Origin: Rebecca billardiae RCC1528 | Taxonomy: Eukaryota; Protista; Haptophyta | Assembly (NCBI GenBank): GCA_965240325.2 | Contig: OZ251228.1 | Coordinates: forward strand, 1,426,001 to 1,490,000 | Direction: 5' to 3' | Length of the DNA stretch: 64,000 nucleotides | Part shown: in pieces, positions 10,586 to 44,747 of the stretch | How positions within the stretch are numbered: the stretch's first letter is position 1 | Layout of the letters: every line of letters starts with the position of its first letter | Made by a program: the position numbers and the translations under genes | Notes under the pieces: generated by a model | Told to the model about the DNA's origin: nothing | The model's database searches: none | The model's input: only the letters and a program-made list of their open reading frames with translations

Positions 10586-13500
10586 CTACAGCTCCGAGAA
10601 GAATTGGAGCATTGCGTCGAGCGAGTACTCCGTCCTCAGCAAGCGGTCGAGGAGCGGTAGCCGCTGCACCACGTTGATGCCCCTGAACTTGTACTTGTCG
10701 ATGTACAAGTCCACGACGATGTTGATCAGATAGTCGAGCTGTCGCGGCATCTGCGCAAACTCCGAGCGGATCGTTGCCGCGTTGGCGAGGATGTCGAGGT
10801 AGCTCGGGTCGAGGAAGGAGACGTCGTCCTCCTGCTGCTCAATCTCCTTGAGCGTGTCGATCAGCTTCACCTGCGCGCGGGCGAGGGCGCGGCGGCGCAC
10901 GCGCCGACGGCGGCGGCTCGACGCCGTGTGCGCGCGCATGCGCGCGCGCGCGGCCGTCGCTCTGCGGTGTGCCGGGCATGCGCGCTCGCTCGCGCGCGCG
11001 CACCTTGTGTGAGAGCGAGTTCTGGTAGCCGAGCATCGGGTGGATGAGCTTGAGCATGTGCACGACCGCCTCGTCCTTGACGTCGTACGCCGTCTTGATC
11101 TGCACCTTGCGCTGCGTCGCCTCGCGGCCGATCATCTCCTTGAGCGTGGTGAGCGTCGTCAGGTTGTCCGACCTGAAGGTCGCGTCCCCCTTGCGGTAGC
11201 TCGCGAACAGGAAGGTTCCGAGAAACGTGCTGCGGAACACGTAGGACACCTCGTCCTCCTGCACGCGCTCGGGCACCTGCGGCGGCCCGGGCGCGGCGCG
11301 CGTGGCAGGGCGGCGCGTGTGGGCGGGCAGCGGGCGGGCGCGGCGGCGTGCCCGCGCGGCGCGAGCGGCGCGGACGGCGGCGCGCTCGTCGCGCGCGCCG
11401 CCTCCGCCCGTTCCTTCCGCGTGCGGATGGATCGCTGGCGGGCGGCGCCACACCTCTGGTAGAGCCATCACCACCCACGAGTGCATCTCCGCGAGCGAGA
11501 AGCTGCCGGTGAGGCGGAGCTCGGACATCGGCCGCGTCGACGCGTCCTCCGGCACGACCTGCAGCCGCCGGTGCAGCGAGAGCGGCCGGATGGAGTAGGA
11601 GGCCGCCTGCGCCGTCTTGGGCTGTCCCTTAGGGACCACGTACGCCTGGCGGCGGCGCGGCGCGGCGAGCGCGGCGCGAGCGGCGCGGCGCGGCGAGCGC
11701 GGCGCGAGCGGGGCGCGCGGAGGCGGTCGGCATGCATCGCGCGGCGCGGGCGCGGGGCGGGGTCGTGCGCGCGCGCGCGCGCGCGGGCAGGCGCCGCCGC
11801 CGCCGCACCTGCAGGTTGCCGTACCGCCCCTCGATCGTGCGCAGCCGCACCTCGATGCGCGTGGACTTGTCTGTCACGCGGTAAGTCGCGAGGAGCGAGT
11901 TCGCCTGCCCGACCGTGCGGCTCACGATCGCGCTCGACTCGTCGCGCCCCGCGATCTCGCCGCCGGCCTCGAGCTGCATCGAGTCGAGCACGTCCATCGG
12001 CACGTCCGACTGCAGCAGCACGAAGTCGAGCGGCTTCGACAGCTCGATCGAGAGCCGGTAGCACGCCTCGTCCTCTGCGAGGGCAAACGTGTCGCGCAGC
12101 TTGACGTCTGCCTGGACGGCAATCATGTCCTCGGAGATTTGGGACATGTACCGCGCCTTCTCCTGCTCGATGCGCGCGGCGGTCGCCTCGATCTCCTTGC
12201 GCATCGCGCGCACGCGCTTGTCCAGCGCCATCTTCTTCGGGTCGGCGCCCGCCGCGATCGCCGCCTGCTCCGCCTTGGCCTCCTTGTCAGTCATCCGGAT
12301 CGACTTGACCGATTTGAGCACGCCCTTGGCGCGCTCGAGCTTGCCCACCTTCTCGCCCTCGTCGTTGTCGGCGGCGGCGCCGTCGTCCGGCTCGCCGGTG
12401 AAGTCGATCTGCGAGGAGGGCTCGGAGGAGAAGGAGAGGATGTGCCCCGAGTACGTCGAGACCACCACCTCGTCGAAGCTCGGCGAGTTCACCAGACCGG
12501 CGTGCACGGCCGTCACCGAGCCGACCAGCGCCGACTCAAAGCACAGCTTGGGCTCCTCGGCCACGTCGAAGGAGAAGACCTGCACCGTGCCGTCGTCGCG
12601 GCCGATGAGCAGGTCGTTGGTCCCGTCGTGCGTGATGTCGTGCGACGAGATCGCCGTCACGCCCCCGCGCCGCGTCGCGCTCTTCGCGCCGAGCGCGCTG
12701 AGCGAGCGACCGCCTACCTGCCACCCGCGCCGCATGGCGTTCTCATCGAGCAGCAGCTGGCCCACGATCCCGTTCTCCGTGCCGTACACGAGCTCCGCGC
12801 CGGGGCGCGCGGCGGGGTTCTTCTTCTGCGCGGCGCTCGGCGCCGCCGGGTTCGGGTCGAGCGTGTTGAAGTTGAGCAGGTTGCTCGCCGTGCCCGCCTT
12901 GGACGAGTGCTGCGCGATCGTGAGCACGGGGCCGTCCACCGTCCCCTCATACATGATGTCCGAGTCGTGCAGCACGCGCACGGTGCGGTCCTGGCAGCCG
13001 AGCACCGGGTTGGGCTCGAGCGCGCCCGGGGTGACGTACACGGCGACCAGGTCGTTGATCCGGTCGTTCGCCATCAGGAAGTGCGCGTCCTTACAGTCGC
13101 TGCGCGCACGCAACACCCAGCACGCGGAGCGCACACGCGCACGTGCTCGTGTGAGCCGCGGCGGCGCGCGCACAGCGCGCCCCTCTGAGGCGCGGCGCGC
13201 GCGGCGCGGCGCGGCGGCCGCGGGACGCACCGGAAGTGGTTGTAGATGTACTCGCCGCCCGTGTAGATGTCCTCGTTCAGCACGAACATCGAGCTGATGT
13301 CCTCGGAGAGGTTGGTGTTGAACTTGAGGAACTCCTTGCCCTTTCGCGACCACGCCTTGATGGTCTGCCCGGCGGCGGCGAAGATCTTGTCGCGCTCGTC
13401 GAGCGTGCCGCCGAGGTCGATGCACGACACGCCCTTCTCCATCGTCCCCTTGAAGACCACACTCACGTCGCCGCGCTTCATGCCGAACACGCTCACCGAG

Positions 13501-23850: not shown

Positions 23851-24241
23851 TAATTATGTCCAATAATGCAAGATGAAGATGATACCCGCATGCCAATAGC
23901 AGTTCGCCCCAAATGAAACTGTAGTACTACTCAGCTATAGACTGTGATGAATAGTGGTGCGCGCTCATGTACAGAAAAGTATAAGGGTATTGACGAAATA
24001 TATCCTCAGCGGGTGCGGCATCATCTAGATCTCCACCCGGAAAGGCCTTGGTGAAATGAAATATCCTACCGAGAGAGGTACATGTATCATTTAACGGCGG
24101 TGAATCGGATTCAGCGCGCACCTTTCGACGAATGACAAGCTGAGAGCAGGTTTGGTGGAAGGAATAGCGAGGATTCCTTAAGCACTCCACTGCCACCCAC
24201 ATCTTCTCACATCAAGATCACGAGGCGCGGCCGCGGTGCCG

Positions 24242-26701
24242 ATGAGCGCGTTTCTGCACGTGGCGGGCAGCGGCGCGGGAGCTCCACCTGTGCCGCCCGT
24301 AAGCACATCACCAAAGCCGCGCTTGGCCATTGCATCCGTCACCGCGCCGCCGCCGGCGCTCAACGAGCCTCAGAAGCTGCGGCCGTTTCTGCCCGCCGCG
24401 ATCGCACCGACAGGCGGCCCGCGCGCGCACGTGCCGCGGGGCGCGCGAAAAACGCACTCGGGGCCGCAGCCGACGTTTGATCGCGGCCACGCCTTTGTTG
24501 ACCACTCCAAGCAGCTCTTCGCCAGCCGCCGCGCCGTGGCCCTCGCGCACCCGCGCGGCGCGCGCACGCCGGGCATGACGACGAGCCCCTGGGTCGATCC
24601 CAATGCGCCTCCCTTGGTGCGGAGACAGTCTACGGGGCCGAGTGGCGAGGCGCGTGAGCGACTTCCTCGGCTCTCCGAGCCGGAGGGCGCCTACCGTGGG
24701 CACGCGGCCCGGCACCCGGCGCTTCCCGGGCCGTTGGATCGCGACGCTCTGGACGGGTCTGCTGCGTCTCTCGCTATCTCGCCGCCGCCCGAGGATAGCA
24801 TCGGCGCGCCCACGCGCTCCCCGACGCGGCGCTCCCCCTCGCTGCACTCATCACCACGCCGCGCTTCCTTCCGCACATCGCCGGGCCAGAGCCGCTCGCC
24901 CGTCAAGTCGTCGCCGCTGGCGCGGCCTCACAGGCCCAAGTCCCTCCGGCACTCGGTCTCGTCGCACTTTGACCTGCACTCGATCCGCGGCTCGCTGCTC
25001 GAGGAGGCGCTGCGCCCTCCCAACGCGGAGGCGGCGCTCATGGCGAGCACGGCGCTCGGCACCGCGCTCGCGCGCTCGCCGTCCACGTCCGTGCTCAACG
25101 AGCGAGGCGGCAGGCCGCTCGGCGACATCCCGCGCTCGAGCTCGGCGCACGCGGCGCTCTCCGCCCTCGCGGACGGCGACGACGACGGCGACGACGACGA
25201 CGACGGTGACGACCATCCGAACGCGGACGCCGCGGCGGCTGGTGATGCGGATGGCCCGCATGACCACCTGGAGCGCTTTGTCACACTCCTTGAGATCTCG
25301 CCGCTCTTCGCCTCGCTCAGCCGCGCCGAGCTCGAGGCCGTGTGCGCGGCCGCGCGGTACAGCGTGCACGCGCGCAACCATGTGGCTTTCCGTGAGGGCG
25401 CGCCCGCGCTCTCGATCGGCGTTCTCCTGGCCGGCGGGCTCGAGGTGCGCGACCACAGCGGGCGCGAGGAGGTGCTCGAGCGGCGGGTACAGCAGAGCAC
25501 CGCGCCGCCGCTCTTCGGCCTCGAGGGTTGCGGTCTCTTCCCGCGCCTCGCCACCGCGCGCGCGCGCACAGACGGCTGCGCTGTGATGATGATCCCGCGC
25601 GGCGCGCTGCCGCCAGAGGTGCTGGGCGCGGCGTCGCGAGAGGTGGTGCTCAGCCTGCTCAAGCGCACGCGCGAGCTCGAGGCGCCGCTCACCCGCAGCG
25701 CCGCCGCGCGCGCCGCTCTCGCGCCCCTCTTCAAACCCGTCAAGATCGGCGCGGGCGAGGTGCTCACCTCGCAGGGCGAGCCCGCCGACGCCCTGTATGT
25801 GCTCGTCGCTGGCACACTCGACGTGCGCGTGCGCGCTGGCCACGGCGCGGAGGTGCAGGTGGGCATGCTCGAGACGCGGCACGACGACCACTCGGTGCTG
25901 CTCGGCGAGACGGTGCTCCACGCCGGCGGTGTGCGCACGTCGACCGTCGTCGCGCGAGAGCCGAGCTGGCTCCTGCGCATGGACAGCATCGAGGTCCCCA
26001 AGCTGGCCGCGGCCGTGCCCGAGCTTCTCGATGCGCTCGCAGAGGTGTGCGCGCGCGCGCGCGCCCGCGCCCGCGTCCGGGTGTCGATGACGCGCATCGC
26101 TCCCGCGGCGCGCGGCGGGAGCACGGCGCCATCGGCCGCGCCCAAGTTGACCTGTGCCCTACCCTCGGCCCTACACCTGCGCACCGTGCCACGGCGACCC
26201 GCGCAGGCTCGCTCGCTGCGCGACGCGGCGGATCGATCCAAAGTGCATGTGGCGGAAATGAGGCACGAGGAGGAGGTGGAGCGCGCGCTGGCGGAGTGCA
26301 CGTCCTTGGACAGCGCGTTGGCCCACTTGGGCGCACCTGCCGTTGACCCCACGCACGACGACCATCACGAGGAGGTGATCAAGAACACGCTTGCTGTGGC
26401 CGGCTTTCGTCGGCGCTCCGTTGGCCTCAACGCGGGGCTCGCGCGGCACGCCAAGATGATGCTGCACGGGACGGAGGAGGGGCCGCACAACGAGGCTGGC
26501 GGTCCGCGCGCGCGCAGTGGTACACCCGGCATCGATGCCTGGCGGCCAGAAGACAGAGGCGCCGGCACGCCGTCTACCCCGCCAGAGGAGACGCAGCTCC
26601 CTTCGCTCACAAATCGACGGTCCGTCATGGCGCAGGTGCGCGTCATTGAGCGCGCGAGCATGGCGGCGGCCTCCAAGACCACCGGCGCAGCAGGCTGCTG
26701 A
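24242..26701 (+). CDS. Protein with two cyclic-nucleotide-binding (CNB/Crp-like) domains after a disordered N-terminus; in-frame intron 26045..26206
   Basis: PLFASLS-x-x-EL...FREG...LLAGGLEV...FGLEG...RLATARA and LTSQGEPADALYVLVAGTLDV...LGE...RTSTVVA. Confidence 0.8.
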   Translation: MSAFLHVAGSGAGAPPVPPVSTSPKPRLAIASVTAPPPALNEPQKLRPFLPAAIAPTGGPRAHVPRGARKTHSGPQPTFDRGHAFVDHSKQLFASRRAVALAHPRGARTPGMTTSPWVDPNAPPLVRRQSTGPSGEARERLPRLSEPEGAYRGHAARHPALPGPLDRDALDGSAASLAISPPPEDSIGAPTRSPTRRSPSLHSSPRRASFRTSPGQSRSPVKSSPLARPHRPKSLRHSVSSHFDLHSIRGSLLEEALRPPNAEAALMASTALGTALARSPSTSVLNERGGRPLGDIPRSSSAHAALSALADGDDDGDDDDDGDDHPNADAAAAGDADGPHDHLERFVTLLEISPLFASLSRAELEAVCAAARYSVHARNHVAFREGAPALSIGVLLAGGLEVRDHSGREEVLERRVQQSTAPPLFGLEGCGLFPRLATARARTDGCAVMMIPRGALPPEVLGAASREVVLSLLKRTRELEAPLTRSAAARAALAPLFKPVKIGAGEVLTSQGEPADALYVLVAGTLDVRVRAGHGAEVQVGMLETRHDDHSVLLGETVLHAGGVRTSTVVAREPSWLLRMDSIEVPKLAAAVPELLDALAEVCARARARARVRVSMTRIAPAARGGSTAPSAAPKLTCALPSALHLRTVPRRPAQARSLRDAADRSKVHVAEMRHEEEVERALAECTSLDSALAHLGAPAVDPTHDDHHEEVIKNTLAVAGFRRRSVGLNAGLARHAKMMLHGTEEGPHNEAGGPRARSGTPGIDAWRPEDRGAGTPSTPPEETQLPSLTNRRSVMAQVRVIERASMAAASKTTGAAGC

Positions 26702-27108: not shown

Positions 27109-27147
<39 letters not shown>
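27109..27147. repeat. (TA)n microsatellite abutting the 3' end of the family-1 retroelement
   Basis: Pure TA run followed by GTGT and then the B2 repeat. Confidence 0.95.
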
Positions 27148-27151
<4 letters not shown>

Positions 27152-27155
<4 letters not shown>

Positions 27156-28212
27156 CCTCCTGCATGAAGAGCGACGCGACGCCATTGAGTATGGACGAAC
27201 ATCACCCACAGTCTGCGTGATGTGCATGACGAGGGCAGGTATTGCAGCATATATGCGAGCATGCAGCAAATGCCGATACACACCATGCCGAAATGGTGAT
27301 GTATAAATATATACTTGCGCGTGGTGGGGATTTGTCCCTGGCTGAACGGGAAGAGCGACTGAGCCGACGGTGCCAAAGCTGCGCGCAGACTGCGCCAGCG
27401 TGTGGCAGCAAGGTCCCTGGCTCAGGCAAGCGCAGCACTCACAGGCCTGACGACAAGGTTGTCAACCACAACGGAGGCTGCAGGGGCGGATGGCGGGTTT
27501 CGCAACGAGCACAAGCAAAGAACGCAGAGGAGATGGCGGGACCTCGGGCTTTGCAAATGCGCAGGCCGAAGCAGGGGCTGCCGAGAGATGAGCAGCTCGG
27601 CCCGAAAGGTCGTGTAACCGATGATCGAGCGAGCTCTGCTAGGTGGGCTGCTTGATATGAACTTTGGTAAGTTGCCACGCCGACTTAAGATGACCTTGGA
27701 TATGATCTCGAGCGCCGGATAGTGGAGAGGAGCGGGTACTTACAGAGGAGCCAGTGTGGTTGGCCGATATGAAAGGACCAGCGCCCGCCATGATGATGAT
27801 AAAGGATAGCTCCGTGGCCGATGAGCTCCGGAAATCGACTGCAACTACCTGCAGGACCTAGAAGACGATGGCGGCCCTTGTCCACCAGCTGCGCGTTGCC
27901 TTTCCAGCCTCCCGACACACTCGGTTATAACTCCGTTATAACGCCACGTGTCCTCCTGCATGAAGAGCGACGCGACGCCATTGAGTATGGACGAACATCA
28001 CCCACAGTCTGCGTGATGTGCATGCGAGGGCAGGTATTGCAGCATATATGCGAGCATGCAGCAAATGCCGATACACACCATGCCGAAATGGTGATGTATA
28101 AATATATACTTGCGCGTGGTGGGGATTTGTCCCTGGCTGAACGGGAAGAGCGACTGAGCCGACGGTGCCAAAGCTGCGCGCAGACTGCGCCAGCGTGTGG
28201 CAGCAAGGTCCC
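27152..28212 (-). repeat. Family-1 B1-A2-B2 terminal structure (265/266-bp direct repeats flanking a 450-bp A repeat plus spacer)
   Basis: 27152-27417 matches 27948-28212. The A repeat recurs inverted at 37567-38025. Confidence 0.93.
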
Positions 28213-28440
28213 GTTTGTGAGCAGGAGAGATCCCGTTGAGGATGAGGGCGCTGCTGAGAGATGATGGAGGCGGATGACACGGAGGAGGCCGGAGGTCTGT
28301 AGCGCAAGGTGGCACGTCCTCGTTTTTTTTTGTTTTTTTTTGAGGTTGCGTGCGTGTGCGCGCGCGCGCGCGCGTTGGGTAAGTAAGCGAGTTCGGGGGT
28401 GGGTGCTTGGGGACCTACAAAGGTCTGGCCCGCAAGGGCT

Positions 28441-28957
28441 GTGCCTACAAAGGCTGTGCCTACAAAGGTCACTGGTGTGCCTACAAAGGTCACGGATGTG
28501 CCTACAAAGGCTGTGCCTACAAAGGTCACTGGTGTGCCTACAAAGGTCACTGGTGTGCCTACAAAGGTCACGGGTGTGCCTACAAAGGCTGTGCCTACAA
28601 AGGTCACGGGTGTGCCTACAAAGGTCACGGATGTGCCTACAAAGGCTGTGCCTACAAAGGTCACTGGTGTGCCTACAAAGGTCACTGGTGTGCCTACAAA
28701 GGTCACTGATGTGCCTACAAAGGCTGTGCCTACAAAGGTCACTGGTGTGCCTACAAAGGTCACGGGTGTGCCTACAAAGGCTGTGCCTACAAAGGTCACG
28801 GGTGTGCCTACAAAGGCTGTGCCTACAAAGGTCACGGGTGTGCCTACAAAGGCTGTGCCTACAAAGGTCACGGGTGTGCCTACAAAGGCTGTGCCTACAA
28901 AGGTCACGGGTATGCCTGCAAAGGCTGTGCCCACAAAGGCTGGTGGCCTACAAAGGC
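28441..28957. repeat. Minisatellite of interspersed 15-bp (GTGCCTACAAAGGCT) and 21-bp (GTGCCTACAAAGGTCACKGRT) units, ~27 copies
   Basis: Directly visible tandem array between pol and B1. Confidence 0.95.
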
Positions 28958-29172
28958 TTGGCCGAAGCGTAGAGACGATGTTGCTGCAACTTGAGCGAGA
29001 GATGTGCGCCGCGTCGCCAGAGCGCGCCTCCCAGCGGAGCCGGCAACGCGTGCGCCGGCGCGAGGGCCGGATCCGGCTGCGAGCGCGACTGCAGCGCGAG
29101 CGCGACGGGCGGCGGCCGCCGCCAAACTGCGCCGCGCGACTGGCGAGCAGTCGATGCAGCGGCGTCCGTGTC

Positions 29173-32100
29173 TCAGCGACAAGCGCCCACCGCGGGCGGC
29201 GCGCCACGGACTCGCGAGCGCCGCCACACCGGCCCAGGGTTGCTGGCCTCGCCCACGCGCTCACCGCGCAGCGGCATGGGCGGATCGGCAGCGAGGACGA
29301 GCGGACGCGAGAGCAGCGCGACGAGCTCGTCAAGCAGCGCCTGCACGCGCACGACGGGCACTGCGAGCCACGTCGGGCGTAGGCCGAGCTGGGCGCACAG
29401 GCGCTCGAGGACGCCAAACTCGCCGCGGCTAGCTGCGTCCGCCAACGGGTTCATCTCGGAGAGGAGGAACTCCGAGTCGGCCAGCTCTGCGATCGCCCGC
29501 CATTCAGGGGCGTCGAGCAGCGCGAGGTGCGCGTGCTGCAGCAGCGGGGAGTGCGCGGACAGGTTGTGGAGGATGTGGTCGGTGACAGAGCTGTCGGTGC
29601 GGAGCCGGATGACGGCGCCTGCAATGCGCGGCGCGAAGATCAGCACGTTGGCGAACAGCGCGACGAACTCGAGCGCGACCACCGGCAGAGCGAGGTCCGA
29701 CGCGCGCAAGGGCAGGCTCCAGCAGAGCCCGTGGGCGTAGCCCCCCAGCGACGGCACGCGCGCGCCATCCTTGGCGGCGTCCGAGAAGAGCACGAACGCA
29801 GGCGGCGCCGCGGCCGGCAGGTGCCGGCGGGTCGAGGGGCCCGGCAGCGCGTTGGAGAAGAGCACGCCCGCGGTGGAGCGCAGGAGCTTGGCCCAGCGCG
29901 CGCACGCGGCGCGGAGCGTGGCGGTGATGGGCACCGGCCGCGCTGGGTGGCGGCCGAGCTCGCCGAAGTGCGTGTACAGGCCGTAGAAGAACGTGCGGTT
30001 CGCCGGCGTGAGCGGGCGGAAGTGCTCGAGCAGACCGACGAGCGCGCGAAAGGTAGAGAAGGGTACCGGCCTGCTCGCCAGCAAGTCGTCCAGGATGACG
30101 AGAGCGCGCAGGATCTTGGCCGGCGGCACCGCGAGGACGCCAGCGCAGACGACAAAGTCGCAGCCGAGCCAGAGCGCTGACTGGCCGATTTGGCGCTTCT
30201 CGGGGATGGCCATGAGCAGGCCGAGGCTGGTGGTGACGCGGTGCCAGACGGAGAGAAAGCGCACCGTTCTGTCCACGCCGACGATGGAGAAGTTGGTGTC
30301 GTCCGTGAAGCAGTCGCCGCTGAAGAGGCGCAGCTGGGGGCGCCGCGTGGTCACCGCGAGCGCACGGCGCTGCTCGATCCAGCTGCGCACAGCAGGGGGC
30401 GTCAGCGGGTCAGCGAGCATCGCCTCGAAGCGCGGCAGCTCCTCGTCGTCGAAGCACCGCGAGGCGATCTGCACGACGGTCGTGCTTAGGCGCTGCGCGA
30501 TGTTACTGCTGGGCGAGAGCCCAAAGCCGAGGCGCGACTCAGAGACGACGACGTGGCCGCCGGCGGCAACGCCCTCGCCGTCCGGCCGCAGCCAGAGGAG
30601 GCAGACGTTTGGCAGCTCGGCCGTTGCGACGCCGAGGTGGTTGAAGAAGTCGGCCACGTCGTCTGTGAGCGTGAGTATCGGCTCGCCAAACACGGCGGCG
30701 GCGTCGAGCAGGATCGCGTTGTCGTGCATCTTGCCGCCGACCGTGGGCTTGGCTTCGCGCGGCCACTTGCGCGGCGGCGCGCGCGGCAGGGTGGGCGTAA
30801 GACCCGCTGCGATCATCCGCTCGGCCGCGGCGGACGGGGCAGCCGCTGCTGGGCGGGGCACGTCGTGCCAGCCCGCGGCCGCGTCAGCGACCTCGTCGTG
30901 GAGACCGACAGCGACGTTGAGCGGGATGACAGGCACGCCAGCTGTGTCGACGAGCGCGCGGCGGGGCGCGCCGCCATCGGTCGTGCGGCGGTGCCGGTCC
31001 GGCTCGAGCTTGCGCGGCGTGGACCCCTGCGGGCTGAGCCGGCACGGGAGGAACGGGAAGTCGTCCCAGAAGCTGTACCAGCCGCGCGCCGCGAGGCGGA
31101 GGAGCTCCTTGTGCACGGAGGAGGCGGCCGCGCCGAGGGTGGTGAGGTGCGGCAGCAGCACGAGCTGGAGAGCCACATCGGCCTTGAACCGCACACCGTG
31201 GCGCACAAAGGAGAGCAGCTCGCGGTCGGGGAAGTCGGGACCGACGGCAGCTTCGAGGGCGTCCGGCATGAGCGTGCGCGACTCGAGCGGCGCCGAGAAG
31301 TCGAGCGGCAAGTACACGCCGTCCACCTTGCTCCGAAGGTCCCAGACGATGCCGCGGGCCTCCGGGTGGAAGAGGTCCTGGCCGATGGCGAGCGGCGCGT
31401 TGGTGCGCCGGGCGGCTGAGCCGAGCGAGAGGTACGCGCGCAGGTCGGCCTCCTCGCGGCGGCGCCAGCCCGCGACGAGCTCGAGCGCCGCGGGTAAGAG
31501 GATGTCAGCAACCGACCGCGGGCGGTACGAAGTCGCACGCTGCCGCCGCGGCGTCGGCACGTTGGTGTGAGGAGGGTCAAAGCGCGCCGACGTGGAGTCA
31601 AAGGGGAGCGCGGCGAGCGACCCGAGCGGCACGCGCATCGAGTGACCCTGCAGGGCGACAGGGATGCTGGAGCGGTCGGTGCGCACGCGATCGCCCCAGC
31701 CGGTGAGCGACTGGCCTTCCGTGGCCGGCAAGGAGGCGGCGCGTACAGCGATCATCGCCCGCAGAGCGGCGTCGGTCGCCTCGGCCGCGCGCGCCCCTTG
31801 CGCCCACGAGCGCTGCCTGGCGGCCGCCAGCGCCAGATCGCGCGCGGCCGAGGAACCGGCCGGACCCGTCGCGGCGAGAGGAGGCATGCGACGAGGGAGG
31901 ACGTCCACGAGCGCTGCACACGCAGCGGCGGCCGGCTCGTACAAGTCGGAGCCGGCGAACGCGCCCAAAGGGAACCACTCGCAGCCAGCCGCGAGCATCG
32001 GCGAGCGCGGCGGGCGCGTTCGGCTGGGAAGGGCCACGACGTGCGCCTCGCCGCCAAAGCGGCACTCGGCGCCGCGCAGGCGCGTGGCGTAGATGCCCGT

Positions 32101-32826
32101 CAGCGGCGGGCCACCCGTGAGCGCGCGTGCGACGAGAGACTCGGCCCGTGGGCACGCCTCTGAGCGGGGGCACGACGACGTGGATGAGCCCAGAAAGGAA
32201 GTCGGCGCGCCGCCGGGCGCGCGTCGACCGGCGAGGATGAGCGGCGCGTCGGGATCGTCGAGAGCGACGACGAGCGCCAGCAGCGAGGTGCTGGAGTCCG
32301 TGGATGCACTGAGCGTGCGTGTCGGCTCGACCCACGCCAGCCGCGATGGCGGCATGCCACCTCCGCTGCGCGCCGCAGGCGCGCGCAGCGGCGGCGGCGC
32401 ACCGGCGCCGGCAGATGTCGCCGCCTGGCGAGCCCGCGCGTCGCCGCCGACGCGAGGCGGCGGCAGCCGCGAGCGGTCGAGCAGCGCTGAGGCAGCCACG
32501 CCCGGCGCCAGCGAGGCGAGAGGCGTGGAGCCGCCCCGCCCCGCCGGCGCGAGCGGCGGCGGCGGCGCATCGCAGCCGACAGCCGGCGCGGTTGGGCGCG
32601 CGCGCTTGGCGCCGTCGACGCGGGGCGGCTGCAGCCGCGCGCGGGCAAGCAGCACGGCAGCACCCACGCCCGCCGTCACCGCCGCGACTGGCGAGGAGGC
32701 GGCAGATGACGAGTCGCCTGCGCGCGCAGCCTCAGCACGCAGCGACCGCGGCGAGGCAGCGGCGGCCAGCCCACCCGGCAAGGGAGCAGCAGGTGGTACC
32801 GCCGGCAGGGGCACCTGGGCGCTCAT
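29173..32826 (-). CDS. Pol: DIRS-type reverse transcriptase + RNase H, ending in a 2A-like GEASNPGP and a probably premature TGA
   Basis: RT motifs LTDDVADFFNHL, LGFGLSPSSNIAQRLS, FTDD and WLG. RNase H motifs FSDA, ALEF, TDS and NPLADAASRG. The first ATG (32826) overlaps the ORF1 stop as ATGA. Confidence 0.9.
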   Translation of the reverse strand: MSAQVPLPAVPPAAPLPGGLAAAASPRSLRAEAARAGDSSSAASSPVAAVTAGVGAAVLLARARLQPPRVDGAKRARPTAPAVGCDAPPPPLAPAGRGGSTPLASLAPGVAASALLDRSRLPPPRVGGDARARQAATSAGAGAPPPLRAPAARSGGGMPPSRLAWVEPTRTLSASTDSSTSLLALVVALDDPDAPLILAGRRAPGGAPTSFLGSSTSSCPRSEACPRAESLVARALTGGPPLTGIYATRLRGAECRFGGEAHVVALPSRTRPPRSPMLAAGCEWFPLGAFAGSDLYEPAAAACAALVDVLPRRMPPLAATGPAGSSAARDLALAAARQRSWAQGARAAEATDAALRAMIAVRAASLPATEGQSLTGWGDRVRTDRSSIPVALQGHSMRVPLGSLAALPFDSTSARFDPPHTNVPTPRRQRATSYRPRSVADILLPAALELVAGWRRREEADLRAYLSLGSAARRTNAPLAIGQDLFHPEARGIVWDLRSKVDGVYLPLDFSAPLESRTLMPDALEAAVGPDFPDRELLSFVRHGVRFKADVALQLVLLPHLTTLGAAASSVHKELLRLAARGWYSFWDDFPFLPCRLSPQGSTPRKLEPDRHRRTTDGGAPRRALVDTAGVPVIPLNVAVGLHDEVADAAAGWHDVPRPAAAAPSAAAERMIAAGLTPTLPRAPPRKWPREAKPTVGGKMHDNAILLDAAAVFGEPILTLTDDVADFFNHLGVATAELPNVCLLWLRPDGEGVAAGGHVVVSESRLGFGLSPSSNIAQRLSTTVVQIASRCFDDEELPRFEAMLADPLTPPAVRSWIEQRRALAVTTRRPQLRLFSGDCFTDDTNFSIVGVDRTVRFLSVWHRVTTSLGLLMAIPEKRQIGQSALWLGCDFVVCAGVLAVPPAKILRALVILDDLLASRPVPFSTFRALVGLLEHFRPLTPANRTFFYGLYTHFGELGRHPARPVPITATLRAACARWAKLLRSTAGVLFSNALPGPSTRRHLPAAAPPAFVLFSDAAKDGARVPSLGGYAHGLCWSLPLRASDLALPVVALEFVALFANVLIFAPRIAGAVIRLRTDSSVTDHILHNLSAHSPLLQHAHLALLDAPEWRAIAELADSEFLLSEMNPLADAASRGEFGVLERLCAQLGLRPTWLAVPVVRVQALLDELVALLSRPLVLAADPPMPLRGERVGEASNPGPVWRRSRVRGAPPAVGACR

Positions 32827-34388
32827 CGCCGCGCGCGCGGCAGCGCCCGCGGGCCCGGCGGCGACCGCCGCCGCGGACGCCGGCGAGAGAAGCGGGCAGC
32901 AATCCGCCGGCGGGCGCCCACATAGTGGCCCGTCGGCAAGCCAAAACCCGAGGGCCAAGCGTCGAGAGCATGCTGGGCGAGGTCGACGGCATCGAGCGAG
33001 TGCGCGCCGGCGCCGATCGCGCCGTGGCCGGGTTGGCCCGAACACGGGCAGCGCCGGATGGCCACGTCCGCGAGTGAGGGCTTGGCCCTGCCGTCGGCGC
33101 GCAGCTTCGGGAACCGCGTGGCCACGACCGGCAGGCACGGGTCGACGTGCATCACACTCACGTACGCCGCCGAGAAGGAGCTCAGGCGGAAGAGGCCCAA
33201 GTTGTCCGAGAGCAGCCCGATGCCGAAGCAGTCGTGCGTCTCGGAGACGACATAGCCGACAGGGGGGCCGAAAGGCTTGGTGTTGAGGATGGTCACCTGC
33301 ACGTCCGAGCCGTCGCTCGGCGCAGCGGCAGCAGGCCCGCGCGCCAACTGGCGCTGCTTCTTGCTCGGCGGGGGTTGCAGCTGCGCGCGAGCACGCCCCG
33401 GAGCGGTGGGCGACGGCTGCGGTTGCCCGCGCAAGGGGTTGGCCGGGGTGCTCGGGCCGGGGCCTGCCGACTGGCCGGCGCCCTGGCTGGCGCGGAGAGC
33501 GAGCATCCGGTCGACAAACGCCGCGCTCTGGTTCCAGGTGATCATGGTCGCCTGCGTGGAGCGACAGGCCTCGCGGATGGTGGCCAGCACGACCGACGAC
33601 GGGTCGAGGAACGGCAGCTCAGGAATGCGCGCGAGCGGGTTGGGGTCGGCGAGGGCGACGCCAAAGCGCGTCTCGAGGTCAGCGAGCATCTCATTGACCA
33701 GAGCGACAGCAGCCGTCACCGCCAGGCCGATGCTGACGGCGGCCTGCAGTTCGACGAGCTTGCCAAAGAAGGAGTCGATCTCGGAGACGCCGACGTAGCC
33801 GAACAGCTTGATCGCCGCATCCTCCACGAGATGGAACATCCGGAGGTCTGTCAGCGTGTCCGAGAGCAGCGCCTCGAGCGACACGAACGGCGTCAGCGCG
33901 CAGTAAACGGAGTGCTGCGAGAGGGCGGCGGTGAGCGCGTGCGAGAGCTCGACGATGCCCAGCGCCGTGAACTTGCCCGCCACGAGCGAGGAGCAGAGCT
34001 TGGATTCGAGCGTGAATGTCATCGACGCCTGCAGCTCGGGGACGTCCTCCCTGAGTCGCGCGGACAAGGCGCGCGCCAGAGGGCGGCCCCGCGCGGCCAT
34101 CGAGAGCGTGATGAGCTGGAGGTTGCCGAGCTGCGAGGACGGGCTGGAGCCGGCGAGGACGCGGCGGATGAGGGTGAAACTCGACTGCAGCAGGAGGATC
34201 TCGCGCTGCCCAGCCGGGCTGGAGGCCGCCTTGAGGTCGAGCTCGCGCCACTCCGGGTTGTCCAGGAGAAGCGAGGCCGAGCCGGCAGCAGAGGAGCGCG
34301 GTTGCCGCCGAGGCCCGAGCTCTGCGCAGCGGAGCCGCCATCGCCAGAGCCGAGGCCGACGAGCCTGGCGCGGACAAGCTCGAACGTG
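32823..34388 (-). CDS. Gag-like ORF1 of the retroelement, 5' disrupted
   Basis: Helical ORF directly upstream of pol with a C-terminal C...CPC...H...H cluster (DPCLP...RRCPCSGQPGHGAIGAGAH). The 5' end runs into a T18 tract and a foldback. Confidence 0.65.
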   Translation of the reverse strand, partial: HVRACPRQARRPRLWRWRLRCAELGPRRQPRSSAAGSASLLLDNPEWRELDLKAASSPAGQREILLLQSSFTLIRRVLAGSSPSSQLGNLQLITLSMAARGRPLARALSARLREDVPELQASMTFTLESKLCSSLVAGKFTALGIVELSHALTAALSQHSVYCALTPFVSLEALLSDTLTDLRMFHLVEDAAIKLFGYVGVSEIDSFFGKLVELQAAVSIGLAVTAAVALVNEMLADLETRFGVALADPNPLARIPELPFLDPSSVVLATIREACRSTQATMITWNQSAAFVDRMLALRASQGAGQSAGPGPSTPANPLRGQPQPSPTAPGRARAQLQPPPSKKQRQLARGPAAAAPSDGSDVQVTILNTKPFGPPVGYVVSETHDCFGIGLLSDNLGLFRLSSFSAAYVSVMHVDPCLPVVATRFPKLRADGRAKPSLADVAIRRCPCSGQPGHGAIGAGAHSLDAVDLAQHALDAWPSGFGLPTGHYVGARRRIAARFSRRRPRRRSPPGPRALPRARR

Positions 34389-34447
34389 TTTTTTTTTTTT
34401 TTTTTTAACCGCCACGCCGCTGCCAGCGCCCGCTGTCGTTCGTTGCT

Positions 34448-34613
34448 CTCGCGGGCGCCCTCTCGACCTCGGGCAGCAGCTCAACCGCCACGCCGCTGCC
34501 AGCGCCCGCTGTCGTTCGTTGCTCAAATCCCTATTTGAGCAACGAACGACAGCGGGCGCTGGCAGCGGCGTGGCGGTTGAGCTGCTGCCCGAGGTCGAGA
34601 GGGCGCCCGCGAG
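34448..34613. repeat. Perfect foldback palindrome, 81-bp stem with 4-nt loop, built from the family-2 B repeat
   Basis: 34448-34528 is the reverse complement of 34533-34613, loop CCCT. A further partial inverted copy lies at 34407-34448. Confidence 0.95.
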
Positions 34614-35523
34614 TCGTCAGTCACTGAGCAAGGTCGATTAAGGCTGATGGCTCGCTGACACTGCAGTGCTTCCATATCCGCCAGAGGCCGAGGGTGGGCG
34701 GGCGGGCAAACGATGAAGCGTGCGGGTTGACGCGACAGCGGCGAGAGCAAGAGACCATTGCATGAGGGGCGACGCGGCGAAGACAGATGATGACGTCGCG
34801 CCGCCGAACGATCAGGCGGGGAGCCGGGCCACACAGACAGCCAGCGACCTTACCGAGCAGAGGGGCTGCGGCGACTGCGGTGCACCTCCTGCAGCGGAGC
34901 GTGCACCCGGCAGTGCCCGATGCAGGCGATTCCCTTGCCCAGCTCGGCGCCTTCGTCGTGAGCAGCCCCATGGCGCCCCCGAGAGTGAAGCCTGATCGAT
35001 CCGATGTGAGCGGTAACCAACCGAGTCCTGCAGGTGCGCCGCTGTGGGCCAGATTGGCAGCGCACCAGGACTCCTGCGCGCGGCGGTGCGCACAGGACAA
35101 CGCAGGAATGCCGTGCGAGCCGGATTCTTGGCGTCGCTCATAGACACTCAGTTATAGGTTCCCTATAACGCCACGTCTAGCCACTCCGCCATGCCCGGCT
35201 CGTACAAGGCGTCGGGTACGAATGGACTCTGGAGCTGGATGGTCGCGGCGCGCGGCGTCGTGGAGTAGACAGACCACGATGATCAATCATGGAACGATCA
35301 GGTTAGCTATGTTGGGATTTGAGCAACGAACGACAGCGGGCGCTGGCAGCGGCGTGGCGGTTGAGCTGCTGCCCGAGGTCGAGAGGGCGCCCGCGAGTCC
35401 CGTTTATAAGTTGGAGCGGGCGTCCAAGTAGTCGTTGATGAATCCCGTTTAGAAATAGAAGAGACGAGGACTGCGCGGCCGCGCGCGCACGATCGATCGC
35501 GACGCGCGGCGAGCAGACACGCG
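34533..35523 (-). mobile_element. Truncated copy of the family-2 miniature split-repeat element (partial B2, spacer, A2, B1, partial internal)
   Basis: Close match, with scattered substitutions and indels, to ~38270-39273. A/B junction at 35174|35175. Confidence 0.9.
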
Positions 35524-37566: not shown

Positions 37567-38022
37567 GTGGCGTTATAACGGAGTTATAACCGAGTGTGTC
37601 GGGAGGCTGGAAAGGCGACGCGCAGCTGGTGGACAAGGGCCGCCATCGTCTTCTAGGTCCTGCAGGTAGTTGTAGCCGATTTCCGGAGCTCATCGGCCAC
37701 GGAGCTATCCTTTATCATCATCATGGCGGCCGCTGGTCCTTTCATATCGGCCAACCACACTGGCTCCTCTATAAGTACCCGCTCCGCTCCACTATCCGGC
37801 GCTCGAGATCATATCCAAGATCATCTTAAGTCGGCATGGCAACGTATTACCAAAGTTCATCAAGCAGCCCACCTATCAGAGCTCGCTCGATCATCGGTTA
37901 CACGACCTTTCCGCTTTCGGGCCAAGCTGCTCATCTCTAGGCCACCCCTGCTTGCCTGCGCATCGCCATCAGCAAAGCCCGAGGTCTCATCTCCTCTGCG
38001 TTCCTTGCTTGTGCTCGTTGCG

Positions 38023-38025
<3 letters not shown>
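37567..38025 (+). mobile_element. Solitary family-1 A repeat (element 5' end), inverted relative to the RT element
   Basis: Reverse complement of 27498-27947 with roughly 14 substitutions and 6 indels by eye. Begins CAATAT|GTGGCGTTATAACGGAGTTATAAC. Confidence 0.92.

Positions 38026-38092
<67 letters not shown>
38026..38092. repeat. (TA)n microsatellite abutting the 3' end of the family-2 concatemer
   Basis: Pure TA run of ~33 units. Confidence 0.95.
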
Positions 38093-38095
<3 letters not shown>

Positions 38096-41000
38096 TAGCC
38101 ACTCCGCCATGCCCGGCTCGCACAAGGCGTCGGGTACGAATGGACTCTGGAGCTGGATGGTCGCGGCGCGCGGCGTCGTGGAGTAGACAGACCACGATGA
38201 TCAATCATGGAACGATCAGGTTAGCTATGTTGGGATTTGAGCAACGAACGACAGCGGGCGCTGGCAGGGATTTGAGCAACGAACGACAGCGGGCGCTGGC
38301 AGCGGGTGAGCGGCGTGGCGGTCGAGCTGCTGCCCGAGGTCGAGAGGGCGCCCGCGAGTCGTCAGTCACTGAGCAAGGTCGATTAGGGCTGATGGCTCGC
38401 TGACGCTGCAGTGCTTCCATATCCGCCAGAGGCCGAGGGCGGCCGGGCGGGCAAACGATGAAGCGTGCGGGTTGACGCGACAGCGGCGAGAGCAAGAGAC
38501 CATATTGCATGAGGGGCGACGCGGCGAAGACAGTAGATGATGTCGTCGCGCCGCCGAACGATCAGGCGGGGAGCCGGGCCACACAGACAGCCAGCGACCT
38601 TACCGAGCAGAGGGGCTGCGGCGACTGCGGTGCACCTCCTGCAGCGGAGAGTGCACCCGGCAGTGCTCGATGCAGGCGATTCCCTTGCCCAGCTCGGCGC
38701 CTTCGTCGCGAGCAGCCCCATGGCGCCCCCGAGAGCGAAGCCTGATCGATCCGATGTGAGCGGTAACCAACCGAGTCCTGCAGGTGCGCCGCTGTGGGCC
38801 AGATTGGCAGTGCACCAGGACTCCTGCGCGCGGCGGTGCGCGCGGGACAACGCAGGAATGCCGTGCGAGCCGGATTCTTGGCGTCGCTCATAGACACTCA
38901 GTTATAGGTTCCCTATAACGCCACGTCTAGCCACTCCGCCATGCCCGGCTCGCACAAGGCGTCGGGTACGAATGGACTCTGGAGCTGGATGGTCGCGGCG
39001 CGCGGCGTCGTGGAGTAGACAGACCACGATGATCAATCATGGAACGATCAGGTTAGCTATGTTGGGATTTGAGCAACGAACGACAGCGGGCGCTGGCAGC
39101 GGCGTGGCGGTTGAGCTGCTGCCCGAGGTCGAGAGGGCGCCCGCGAGTCCCGTTTATAAGTTGGAGCGGGCGTCCAAGTAGTCGTTGATGAATCCCGTTT
39201 AGAAATAGAAGAGACGAGGACTGCGCGGCCGCGCGCGCACGATCGATCGCGACGCGCGGCGAGCAGACACGCGTCAGAGTGCGCCGCACCCGCGCGACGC
39301 ACGGGCGCGAGGCGAGCGCGTATCTCAAACGATGAAGCGTGCGGGTTGACGCGACAGCGGCGAGAGCAAGAGACCATATTGCATGAGGGGCGACGCGGCG
39401 AAGACAGTAGATGATGTCGTCGCGCCGCCGAACGATCAGGCGGGGAGCCGGGCCACACAGACAGCCAGCGACCTTACCGAGCAGAGGGGCTGCGGCGACT
39501 GCGGTGCACCTCCTGCAGCGGAGCGTGCACCCGGCAGTGCTCGATGCAGGCGATTCCCTTGCCCAGCTCGGCGCCTTCGTCGCGAGCAGCCCCATGGCGC
39601 CCCCGAGAGCGAAGCCTGATCGATCCGATGTGAGCGGTAACCAACCGAGTCCTGCAGGTGCGCCGCTGTGGGCCAGATTGGCAGTGCACCAGGACTCCTG
39701 CGCGCGGCGGTGCGCGCGGGACAACGCAGGAATGCCGTGCGAGCCGGATTCTTGGCGTCGCTCATAGACACTCAGTTATAGGTTCCCTATAACGCCACGT
39801 CTAGCCACTCCGCCATGCCCGGCTCGCACAAGGCGTCGGGTACGAATGGACTCTGGAGCTGGATGGTCGCGGCGCGCGGCGTCGTGGAGTAGACAGACCA
39901 CGATGATCAATCATGGAACGATCAGGTTAGCTATGTTGGGATTTGAGCAACGAACGACAGCGGGCGCTGGCAGCGGCGTGGCGGTTGAGCTGCTGCCCGA
40001 GGTCGAGAGGGCGCCCGCGAGTCCCGTTTATAAGTTGGAGCGGGCGTCCAAGTAGTCGTTGATGAATCCCGTTTAGAAATAGAAGAGACGAGGACTGCGC
40101 GGCCGCGCGCGCACGATCGATCGCGACGCGCGGCGAGCAGACACGCGTCAGAGTGCGCCGCACCCGCGCGACGCACGGGCGCGAGGCGAGCGCGTATCTC
40201 AAACGATGAAGCGTGCGGGTTGACGCGACAGCGGCGAGAGCAAGAGACCATATTGCATGAGGGGCGACGCGGCGAAGACAGTAGATGATGTCGTCGCGCC
40301 GCCGAACGATCAGGCGGGGAGCCGGGCCACACAGACAGCCAGCGACCTTACCGAGCAGAGGGGCTGCGGCGACTGCGGTGCACCTCCTGCAGCGGAGAGT
40401 GCACCCGGCAGTGCTCGATGCAGGCGATTCCCTTGCCCAGCTCGGCGCCTTCGTCGCGAGCAGCCCCATGGCGCCCCCGAGAGCGAAGCCTGATCGATCC
40501 GATGTGAGCGGTAACCAACCGAGTCCTGCAGGTGCGCCGCTGTGGGCCAGATTGGCAGTGCACCAGGACTCCTGCGCGCGGCGGTGCGCGCGGGACAACG
40601 CAGGAATGCCGTGCGAGCCGGATTCTTGGCGTCGCTCATAGACACTCAGTTATAGGTTCCCTATAACGCCACGTCTAGCCACTCCGCCATGCCCGGCTCG
40701 CACAAGGCGTCGGGTACGAATGGACTCTGGAGCTGGATGGTCGCGGCGCGCGGCGTCGTGGAGTAGACAGACCACGATGATCAATCATGGAACGATCAGG
40801 TTAGCTATGTTGGGATTTGAGCAACGAACGACAGCGGGCGCTGGCAGCGGCGTGGCGGTTGAGCTGCTGCCCGAGGTCGAGAGGGCGCCCGCGAGTCCCG
40901 TTTATAAGTTGGAGCGGGCGTCCAAGTAGTCGTTGATGAATCCCGTTTAGAAATAGAAGAGACGAGGACTGCGCGGCCGCGCGCGCACGATCGATCGCGA

Positions 41001-42420
41001 CGCGCGGCGAGCAGACACGCGTCAGAGTGCGCCGCACCCGCGCGACGCACGGGCGCGAGGCGAGCGCGTATCTCAAACGATGAAGCGTGCGGGTTGACGC
41101 GACAGCGGCGAGAGCAAGAGACCATATTGCATGAGGGGCGACGCGGCGAAGACAGTAGATGATGTCGTCGCGCCGCCGAACGATCAGGCGGGGAGCCGGG
41201 CCACACAGACAGCCAGCGACCTTACCGAGCAGAGGGGCTGCGGCGACTGCGGTGCACCTCCTGCAGCGGAGCGTGCACCCGGCAGTGCTCGATGCAGGCG
41301 ATTCCCTTGCCCAGCTCGGCGCCTTCGTCGCGAGCAGCCCCATGGCGCCCCCGAGAGCGAAGCCTGATCGATCCGATGTGAGCGGTAACCAACCGAGTCC
41401 TGCAGGTGCGCCGCTGTGGGCCAGATTGGCAGTGCACCAGGACTCCTGCGCGCGGCGGTGCGCGCGGGACAACGCAGGAATGCCGTGCGAGCCGGATTCT
41501 TGGCGTCGCTCATAGACACTCAGTTATAGGTTCCCTATAACGCCACGTCTAGCCACTCCGCCATGCCCGGCTCGCACAAGGCGTCGGGTACGAATGGACT
41601 CTGGAGCTGGATGGTCGCGGCGCGCGGCGTCGTGGAGTAGACAGACCACGATGATCAATCATGGAACGATCAGGTTAGCTATGTTGGGATTTGAGCAACG
41701 AACGACAGCGGGCGCTGGCAGCGGCGTGGCGGTTGAGCTGCTGCCCGAGGTCGAGAGGGCGCCCGCGAGTCCCGTTTATAAGTTGGAGCGGGCGTCCAAG
41801 TAGTCGTTGATGAATCCCGTTTAGAAATAGAAGAGACGAGGACTGCGCGGCCGCGCGCGCACGATCGATCGCGACGCGCGGCGAGCAGACACGCGTCAGA
41901 GTGCGCCGCACCCGCGCGACGCACGGGCGCGAGGCGAGCGCGTATCTCAAACGATGAAGCGTGCGGGTTGACGCGACAGCGGCGAGAGCAAGAGACCATA
42001 TTGCATGAGGGGCGACGCGGCGAAGACAGTAGATGATGTCGTCGCGCCGCCGAACGATCAGGCGGGGAGCCGGGCCACACAGACAGCCAGCGACCTTACC
42101 GAGCAGAGGGGCTGCGGCGACTGCGGTGCACCTCCTGCAGCGGAGCGTGCACCCGGCAGTGCTCGATGCAGGCGATTCCCTTGCCCAGCTCGGCGCCTTC
42201 GTCGCGAGCAGCCCCATGGCGCCCCCGAGAGCGAAGCCTGATCGATCCGATGTGAGCGGTAACCAACCGAGTCCTGCAGGTGCGCCGCTGTGGGCCAGAT
42301 TGGCAGTGCACCAGGACTCCTGCGCGCGGCGGTGCGCGCGGGACAACGCAGGAATGCCGTGCGAGCCGGATTCTTGGCGTCGCTCATAGACACTCAGTTA
42401 TAGGTTCCCTATAACGCCAC
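38093..42420 (-). mobile_element. Family-2 non-autonomous split-repeat element as a concatemer: (A-internal-B)x4 - A2 - spacer - B2
   Basis: 874-bp units at 38925-39798, 39799-40672, 40673-41546 and 41547-42420 (B 225 bp, internal 176 bp, A 473 bp). A2 38452-38924; B2 38093-38360. Flanks are TATAT|GT and CCAC|ATATAT. No credible coding capacity. Confidence 0.9.
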
Positions 42421-43399: not shown

Positions 43400-43531
43400 G
43401 TCGTTCGTGAGCGGCTCGGGCGATAAAAACCTAGGCGGCCGGGGAGCGAGGACGGACGCGTGAGTTCGGCGCGATCGGCGGCCGGTTGACTCACGGTGAT
43501 TGGCCCAGCACGGAACGTTCTGGTGGTGAGC

Positions 43532-44636: not shown

Positions 44637-44747
44637 GGTGAGCACCGGACGCACGACGCAGTCGTTCGGCAGTCGCCACGTGAACGCTGCCGGACCGCCT
44701 CGTCGGCCAAGAATCTCCGGCTGGCTGTGTCAATCGTGCGCATCGCG

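Follow-up and report, generated by a model that had tools for sequence, protein, structure and literature searches.

We describe a two-storey stem-loop of about 41 nt that straddles the junction between repeats B and A of a tyrosine-recombinase retrotransposon from the haptophyte Rebecca billardiae RCC1528. The element lies in a 64,000-nt stretch of contig OZ251228.1 (GCA_965240325.2, positions 1,426,001 to 1,490,000, forward strand; here called the window), with a GC content of ca. 68%, in an assembly of 72 Mb and 41 contigs. All positions are those of the window unless another contig is named, and L-numbers designate related loci, including some on other contigs of this genome. In distant relatives, the structure keeps its shape while its sequence changes, and the mapped B|A junctions fall at one fixed place within it. 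We tentatively read the stem-loop as an attC-like folded recombination (att-like) site of the element, an interpretation to which we give somewhat less than an even chance.

The stem-loop at the B|A junction

Self-comparison of the element revealed split direct repeats in the layout A1-internal-B1A2B2, with B1 joined directly to A2. In a clean copy on contig 23, A1 (6889-7340) matches A2 (11467-11918) over 452 bp and B1 (11203-11466) matches B2 (12006-12269) over 264 bp, with an 87-bp middle piece (m) between A2 and B2. Repeat A always opens with GTGGC plus the hairpin, and repeat B always closes with ..GGACAC, or with ..CTAGAC in family 2, a non-coding relative whose 874-bp unit corresponds to A-m-B. 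The element belongs to the split-direct-repeat tyrosine-recombinase retrotransposons, and in the window it reads on the minus strand in the order pol, minisatellite, B1, A2-m-B2, and (TA)n.

The hairpin with which A opens had been noticed in a first-pass annotation of the window, as a GNA triloop on a stem found in two sequence variants. Both variants and all eight sites were recovered as described, as exact matches to GTGGC-GTTATANN-GNA-NNTATAAC, at 27924-27947(-), 37567-37590(+), 35151-35174(-), 38901-38924(-), 39775-39798(-), 40649-40672(-), 41523-41546(-), and 42397-42420(-), against none in 100 dinucleotide shuffles. Genome-wide, there were 219 matches when GTGGC and a GNA loop were required (0 for the reversed pattern, used as control) and 218 when the outer six stem pairs alone were specified (3 for the reversed pattern). 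The compensatory change of the inner stem pairs from AC/GT to GG/CC between families is real, and further paired variants occur elsewhere in the genome (GC/GC with loop GCA or GGA, AC/GT with loop GCA); a broken pair (AC..GG) was seen in 1 of the 100 copies listed. The loop is C(GGA)G in family 1, G(GAA)C in family 2, and C(GCA)G in family 3, and single copies with AAA or AGA appear when the loop is left unconstrained in the search. By nearest-neighbor DNA parameters, the hairpin reaches no more than -5 to -7 kcal/mol, with z-scores between -1.4 and -3.2. This is not exceptional, and the case for the hairpin rests on recurrence and covariation, not on energy.

When 66 nt around the junction were folded, with either RNA or DNA parameters, the GNA hairpin proved in both families to be the inner storey of the larger structure, in which the last 5 to 6 nt of repeat B pair with nt 30 to 35 of repeat A to form an outer stem. 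The family-1 strand reads GGACAC | GTGGC - GTTATAAC - GGA - GTTATAAC - CGAGT - GTGTCG. Here, the end of B1 serves as the outer left arm, two spacers of 4 to 5 nt, the first of them G/T-rich, enclose the 8-bp inner stem and its triloop, and the outer right arm completes the structure. Its family-2 counterpart is CTAGAC | GTGGC - GTTATAGG - GAA - CCTATAAC - TGAGT - GTCTAT. The outer stem covaries as well (GACAC/GTGTC in family 1 versus TAGAC/GTCTA in family 2), which adds two more compensatory pairs.

Since the left arm is the very end of B and the right arm lies in A, the full structure exists only where B meets A. With R1, the covariance model used to score hairpin copies, junction copies obtained 65 to 70 bits, compared to 41 to 51 bits for terminal copies, which have no left arm. 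The hairpin had been placed 5 nt inside the 5' end of the element. This holds for the true 5' ends in the window, at 42420 (flank ..GAATATAT|GTGGC) and 37567 (flank ..CCAATAT|GTGGC), but the sites at 27947, 35174, 38924, 39798, 40672, and 41546 are internal B|A junctions (..GGACAC|GTGGC or ..CTAGAC|GTGGC). Many terminal copies elsewhere in the genome read TATATAT|GTGGC. The hairpins and repeats of the window are as follows.

27913-27953, minus strand: two-storey junction hairpin of family 1 (69.8 bits with covariance model R1), enclosing the hairpin first annotated at 27916-27951
35140-35180, minus strand: two-storey junction hairpin of family 2, by fold and covariance model
38093-42420, minus strand: head-to-tail array of about five 874-bp family-2 units
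38890-38930, 39764-39804, 40638-40678, and 41512-41552, minus strand: complete family-2 junction hairpins in the array
42386-42420, minus strand: terminal family-2 hairpin copy without the left arm
37567-37601, plus strand: terminal (A1-type) family-1 hairpin without the outer left arm, flank CCAATAT (45.7 bits)
37567-38025, plus strand: truncated, inverted family-1 fragment whose 5' end carries that terminal hairpin
27948-28212, minus strand: repeat B1, internal counterpart of the 3' terminal repeat of the element (27152-27417 matches 27948-28212 at 99.6%)
within 27948-28212, minus strand: last bases of B1, ..GCAGGAGGACAC, purine-rich, forming the outer left arm
27152-27947, minus strand: terminal unit A2-m-B2, 796 bp, in which A2 opens at 27947 with GTGGC
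27152-27417, minus strand: B2, closing with ..GGACAC and followed by ACACA(TA)n

Conservation of the fold and the encoded enzymes

Relatives were collected by a protein search of metagenome assemblies with the reverse transcriptase (RT) region, which matched proteins of 28 to 40% identity, and a six-sequence recombinase alignment led to 80 further loci. Among distant metagenomic relatives (recombinase identity of 28 to 42%), at least 13 hairpin types share the same layout on unrelated stem sequences, as in the following three.

L052/L081: CGAGAC-GTCG-AGTTCCCC-CAGA-GGGGAACT-AGGT-GTCTCG
L060: AAGAG-TGCG-GGTTTCAC-GAGA-GTGAAACC-GAGT-CTCTT
L055: the same as L060 except for the loop, GTGT

In L052/L081, L060/L055, L058, L091, L112/L113, L110, L124, and L090, the hairpin is found on the sense strand, 3' of the recombinase gene. 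L087 is an exception, with its hairpin ca. 4.5 kb upstream of the tyrosine recombinase (YR) match and an inner stem, GTTATAGC-GAA-GCTATA, nearly that of this genome. Junction-centered folds gave the two-storey hairpin also in L078, L099/L100/L101, L128, and L106. Inner stems are perfect in most types, with a bulge only in L078. The GNA triloop is not a defining trait: it recurs in L058, L087, L090, and L128, but other relatives have 4-nt or non-G..A loops, and CAGA, GAGA, GTGA, GTGT, CTTG, AAA, and GTC are all found. A covariance model trained on only the three families of this genome plus L052 ranked the sites of the relatives at the top of a scan of 468 kb on both strands, all of them on the sense strand, and strict two-storey matches elsewhere were rare (one in 213 kb of upstream sequence).

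Covariation was evaluated by dealing the right halves among the 13 hairpin types in 5000 permutations, with 12 scored positions. Pairing was observed at 95.5% of scored positions, compared to a mean of 65.7% (maximum of 82%) after permutation, and no permutation reached the observed value, a statistic limited, to the detriment of the folded-site interpretation, by the relatedness of the hairpin types, which are not phylogenetically independent, and by the manual parsing of their segments. Most pairs show two to four pair types, and outer pairs 2 and 4 are invariably A-T. Each parsed segment was compared with its source, and the pair statistics were computed by scripts; MAFFT misplaces the types with 4-nt loops, and model-based alignment mixes junction and terminal copies. 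The covariation of the stem that the first-pass annotation had proposed to test across the termini of related families was found, and, opposite to the outcome that it had named as refuting, it is the TTATA boxes that are lost in other families and the pairing that is kept.

Wherever B1 and B2 are both present, the mapped B1|A2 junction coincides, within one base, with the 3' end of the outer left arm: AAGAG|TGCG in L060, TTAGAAT|G in L078, GGGGAGAA|G in L099/L100, and alike in L128, L106, and L052. In L052 (CGAGAC|GTCG), the identity between B1 and B2 extends 3 nt more (..GACGTC), the flank also opening with GTC. The crossover had been thought to lie outside the hairpin. With the overlooked outer stem included, it sits between this stem and the inner hairpin, as expected for a tyrosine recombinase acting on an attC-like site. 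The resemblance of L052 to loop A of the hairpin ribozyme (N|GUC) was considered and dropped, as other families have no GUC and there is no second domain.

In L055 (ENA ERZ27293332 k119_308808, 6147-6491), a junction hairpin stands between the pol of one element and open reading frame 1 (ORF1) of a second, diverged element, which suggests that such elements use one another's junction site for insertion.

The coding part of the window copy comprises the following features.

29173-33138, minus strand: pol frame with RT and RNase H and without the recombinase part, 97% identical to the RT/RNase H part of the contig 33 copy
32823-34526, minus strand: upstream ORF1, presumed gag-like, without Pfam match, its 5' part running into family-2 debris
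28433-28958, minus strand: minisatellite of 21/36-bp units between the pol end and B1, at the same position in other copies

The contig 33 copy (L046:2223-6173:-) encodes RT, RNase H, and YR in a single 1317-amino-acid (aa) frame, which runs past an ..NPGP motif common to the window pol into a C-terminal tyrosine recombinase. This 2A-like motif, GEA(S/R)NPGP, separates RNase H from what follows it in pol (window 29173-29277; L046:2223-6173:-), and the window frame ends soon after it, the recombinase part being absent. Pfam Phage_integrase gave 23.9 bits (E value of 4e-5) on the contig 33 copy, under the 27.1-bit cutoff, and 29.9 bits, above it, on the relative P0002. Residues R112, K168, H255, R258, W281, and Y290 (R..K..HxxR..W..Y) are invariant in 15 sequences, and the recombinase profile matches XerD (E value of 0.0014) and Cre. 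The enzyme, for which the first-pass annotation had left the choice between YR and HUH-Y, is by these catalytic residues and profile matches a tyrosine recombinase.

That annotation had also likened the element to HUH/Y1 systems, in which single-strand transposition of the IS200/IS605 or Helitron kind would proceed via the subterminal hairpin. The resemblance consists of the subterminal hairpin and the lack of a target site duplication. Neither an HUH nor a Y1 domain was detected by Pfam in any long ORF of the element or in the contig 33 pol. The enzymes encoded are instead RT, RNase H, and tyrosine recombinase, and split direct repeats are typical of tyrosine-recombinase retroelements. We regard this mechanism as effectively refuted and give it next to no probability.

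The RT carries conserved motifs in an alignment of relatives (DDFKDxFNQL, RLGFGxS, YTDD, KRQ, and WLG, followed by the RNase H motif SDAA..E..D) but was not recognized by Pfam RVT_1, which sees none of the RTs in this clade, nor by a profile search of PDB sequences. The best PDB matches to its predicted fold were all retroviral, Ty3, or cauliflower mosaic virus RTs (E values from 5e-5, probability up to 1.0), although the model was poor (predicted local distance difference test score of 56). By its conserved motifs and by this fold comparison, which alone among the searches identified it, the RT is of the long terminal repeat (LTR)/retroviral type. No DNA_methylase match was obtained in the pol of this genome at E values up to 5. 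In P0002 (L053/L054), a C-5 DNA methylase domain occupies the N terminus (aa 2 to 367) of a 2134-aa pol; in DIRS and PAT elements, this domain is normally 3' of RNase H.

Only five copies of the recombinase were found in the genome, all at least 99% identical, and no divergent autonomous families. Families 1 to 5 and the non-coding family 2 consequently share one enzyme set, and the fact that this single lineage serves families with compensatorily changed stems speaks for recognition by shape and not by sequence. It is also here that an ordinary duplex palindromic site has to be weighed, in which a dimer of the recombinase or of an accessory protein would read symmetric half-sites GTTATANN beside the crossover with no folding involved. 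The motif is a near-perfect palindrome with outer positions invariant within this genome, and symmetric operator-like sites also show apparently "compensatory" changes. However, families under the same recombinase differ at two inner and two outer pairs with complementarity kept, the arms of the outer stem are ca. 29 bp apart, and the strand-specific asymmetries described below could not be sensed in a duplex site. A classical duplex core site was rejected, as there are no inverted arms around a 6-to-8-bp spacer at the crossover. We consider the plain palindromic duplex site improbable.

No copy seen in the genome combines ORF1, RT/RNase H, and recombinase. The window copy has ORF1 and RT/RNase H, the contig 33 copy has RT/RNase H and recombinase, and those on contigs 23, 18, and 12 lack most of the RT. 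With five recombinase copies and no full gene set seen, the family may propagate by complementation in trans.

Strand asymmetry and possible mechanisms

The standard model of these elements calls for a site of recombination where B joins A. If the stem-loop is that site, the recombinase would read the junction, a copy of the "circle junction" kept inside every element, by its shape, either as a folded strand or as an extruded cruciform. The outer and inner stems would act as the two recombinase-binding duplexes, and the G/T-rich stretch of 4 to 7 nt between them as a weakly paired central region. Cutting and exchange of the strand would take place where the outer stem meets the central region, on the 5' arm of the sense hairpin, as happens on the bottom strand of integron attC sites. 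Its exchange partner would be an alternating purine-pyrimidine target, ..AT|AT.. or ..GT|AC.., with which the G/T-rich spacer could wobble-pair. Binding by the recombinase, action as DNA, and exchange of one strand only are what we infer in this proposal. Tyrosine recombinases usually cleave on the 5' side, where arm and spacer meet, and with this polarity the mapped crossover fits the hairpin of the sense strand and not that of the antisense strand, in agreement with an independent strand bias (see below). The precise head-to-tail arrays also fit site-specific recombination at the junction, as do the solo AB units reported for Ngaro elements (PMC8547959).

The elements are flanked 5' by ..ATAT| or ..TGTGT| and 3' by |ATAT.. 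or |ACAC.., in the arrangements ..ATAT|element|ATAT.. or (TG)n|element|(AC)n. No duplicated unique sequence was found in the flanks, although the microsatellite targets could hide a short target site duplication. Two target tracts are present in the window.

27109-27147: (TA)n target tract on the 3' side of the family-1 element
38025-38092: (AT)34 target tract separating the family-1 fragment from the 3' end of the family-2 array

(TG)n often directly precedes GTGGC, or (AC)7-11 directly follows ..GGACAC, between the element and the (TA)n tract (window 27148-27151; L039+L044 on contig 23, L038+L043 on contig 18, and L037+L042 on contig 33). Either compound microsatellites are targets struck exactly at the block boundary or these tracts are made at integration.

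In its complete form, the proposal is that a eukaryotic retrotransposon recombinase recognizes the joined ends as a folded sense hairpin that mimics a core site, exchanging a single strand while the G/T-rich region wobble-pairs with several targets. We find it doubtful that all of this is right. If it were, folded-end single-strand exchange would explain insertion into (TA)n and (TG/CA)n without target site duplication, as well as the mobilization of unrelated non-coding families that share only the fold.

The two strands of the structure are not equivalent. The "internal loop" is G/T-rich on both sides, and its 60 oppositions include 34 G·T, 2 A·C, and 5 Watson-Crick pairs, which indicates a wobble helix on the sense strand (a continuous G·U helix if this is RNA) and, on the antisense strand, a bubble of A·C oppositions. 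With RNA parameters, the sense fold is the more stable one in 14 of 16 types (mean difference of -2.4 kcal/mol), compared to only 42% of random windows from the same loci; with DNA parameters, the asymmetry is nearly gone (10 of 16 types, mean difference of -0.5 kcal/mol). The sense-strand loops of the 16 types are GGA, GCA, GAA (four types), GGA, GAGA, GTGA (two types), CAGA, GTGT, AAA, CTTG, GTC, and one of 6 nt. Loops with a first G and a last A, frequent but not universal, account for 11 of the 16 and include the GNRA tetraloops GAGA and GUGA. The strand bias favors the sense strand, that is, the RNA strand.

These asymmetries bear on another possible role of the hairpin, as a cis element in the genomic RNA, where it would fold at the single complete B1|A2 junction and serve reverse transcription through RT recognition or packaging, through template switching that rebuilds the ends, or by positioning the plus-strand primer. 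The last 15 nt of B contain a mean of 10.2 purines against a background of 7.1, with at least 11 in 9 of 15 families, and the end of B resembles a polypurine tract directly 5' of the first base of A. Priming there could start plus-strand DNA at this base, in which case replication and not the recombinase would set the element ends. RTs of the LTR/retroviral group, to which this one belongs, use polypurine-tract priming, and RNA is the only sense single strand certain in the life cycle. Several observations do not fit so well. A polypurine tract acts in an RNA:DNA hybrid and would not need a hairpin, and no concrete priming scheme that we tried reproduces the junction sequence; fold-back self-priming from the B end on the right arm, for example, was discarded, as its product would carry the complement of the loop and mismatch the junction. 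A fixed DNA crossover position in at least seven families is most simply a property of a recombinase. Rfam 15, ribozymes included, gave no match at the hairpins, and a known RNA family or ribozyme at the junction was rejected. We consider an RNA-level role unlikely, though a serious competitor.

The only Rfam matches were sub-threshold and microRNA-like, on (TA) repeats and on a long palindrome. This 166-nt near-perfect palindrome (34448-34613; 81-nt arms, 4-nt spacer) consists of two family-2 fragments head to head and lies just upstream of ORF1 of the RT element.

The suggestion of the first-pass annotation that a folded single strand is used therefore stands in part: the stems covary and the sequence is selected to pair within one strand, but use as single-stranded DNA is conjectural, and the asymmetries favor the sense strand, which is that of the RNA. 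For the folded DNA site that we prefer, this bias, the G..A and GNRA-type loops that form part of it, the purine-rich end of B, and the certainty of a sense single strand only as RNA are all unfavorable. Other observations weigh in the same direction. A central region of 4 to 5 nt, as seen in several families, is short for a tyrosine recombinase. Integron attC has extrahelical bases in its distal (L) stem, by which the choice of strand is directed, whereas none were seen in the junction hairpin, the bulge of L078 aside. The available flanks of L053, L054, L056, L057, and L059 yielded no two-storey hairpin, which is weak evidence as their contigs end near the gene. The only single-stranded cDNA documented in this order, that of DIRS-1, is antisense (PMC7192593).

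Two other features of the window are a foldback unrelated to the retroelement (43519-44649; 411-nt arms, 98% complementary, 309 nt apart) and a host-like ORF on the plus strand (24236-26701) with two cyclic-nucleotide-binding domains (Pfam PF00027, E value of 5e-17).

Comparison with known systems

The element shares its A1-[ORFs]-B1A2B2 layout with the DIRS order, in which it has been described for Ngaro (PMC8547959) and for the PAT group (PMC4157794), including TOC and kangaroo of green algae. Also as in this order, an LTR-type RT and RNase H are followed by a C-terminal tyrosine recombinase, there is no target site duplication, and solo and tandem AB units and non-autonomous families sharing only the termini are found. 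It differs in its RT, which is invisible to Pfam RVT_1 and whose profile finds no PDB sequence. Since no methyltransferase domain is detectable here and yet an N-terminal one is present in P0002, a clean placement in either PAT or Ngaro is not possible. To our knowledge, how DIRS, PAT, and Ngaro elements choose and cut their ends and targets has never been shown experimentally. Their recombination site is undefined in the literature that we searched, and PMC3266345, PMC4157794, PMC7192593, and PMC8547959 do not mention a junction stem-loop, palindrome, or polypurine tract, although the older key papers (Goodwin & Poulter 2001/2004, Duncan 2002, and de Chastonay 1992) were outside this search and might contain a prior description.

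DIRS-1 also carries an internal copy of its joined termini, the internal complementary region. Transposition depends on this copy, the junction has been noted as self-complementary, and intermediates of single-stranded cDNA are known (PMC7192593). Its complementarity, however, is between the internal region and inverted terminal repeats, as a splint for antisense cDNA, whereas here there is a direct copy of the junction with a local, sense-biased hairpin. As for the LTR-retroelement polypurine tract, the likeness is a purine-rich run that directly precedes the opening base of the repeat at the start of the element. Unlike a typical tract, this run, whose role is only putative, is short and mixed (e.g., GGAGGACAC or AGGAAGAG), absent in 2 of 15 families, and paired into a hairpin arm.

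With integron attC, the junction shares an imperfect palindrome of which the structure and not the sequence is conserved, a tyrosine recombinase as the enzyme, and the succession of basal duplex, weak central spacer, second duplex, and small terminal loop. The attP(+) hairpin of the CTX phage, used by XerCD, is a comparable folded site. An attC site consists of an R box, an unpaired central spacer, an L box, and a terminal structure that can be as small as 3 nt (the GAA triplet in attCaadA1), and its cleavage occurs beside the spacer, in the R box on the 5' arm (PMC2727003). Here too, the crossover is on the 5' arm at the boundary between basal duplex and spacer, in the families of this genome and in L052, L060, L078, L099/L100, L128, and L106. 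On the other hand, this is a eukaryotic retroelement and neither a phage nor a bacterial cassette, its spacer pairs as a G·T wobble tract and is not a true bubble, and attC recombines as single-stranded DNA with exchange of only one strand, which for the junction hairpin is a conjecture.

A shape-conserved structure at the circle junction, with mapped crossovers, provides a concrete substrate for in vitro work and a search key with which these elements and their non-autonomous partners could be annotated. Should the site work in RNA, it would be the first cis-acting replication signal of this order; should it work folded, single-strand recombination of the attC/CTX type would be extended from bacteria to eukaryotic retroelements. 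The novelty is in the combination of a tyrosine-recombinase retroelement with a folded att-type site, both kinds being already known.

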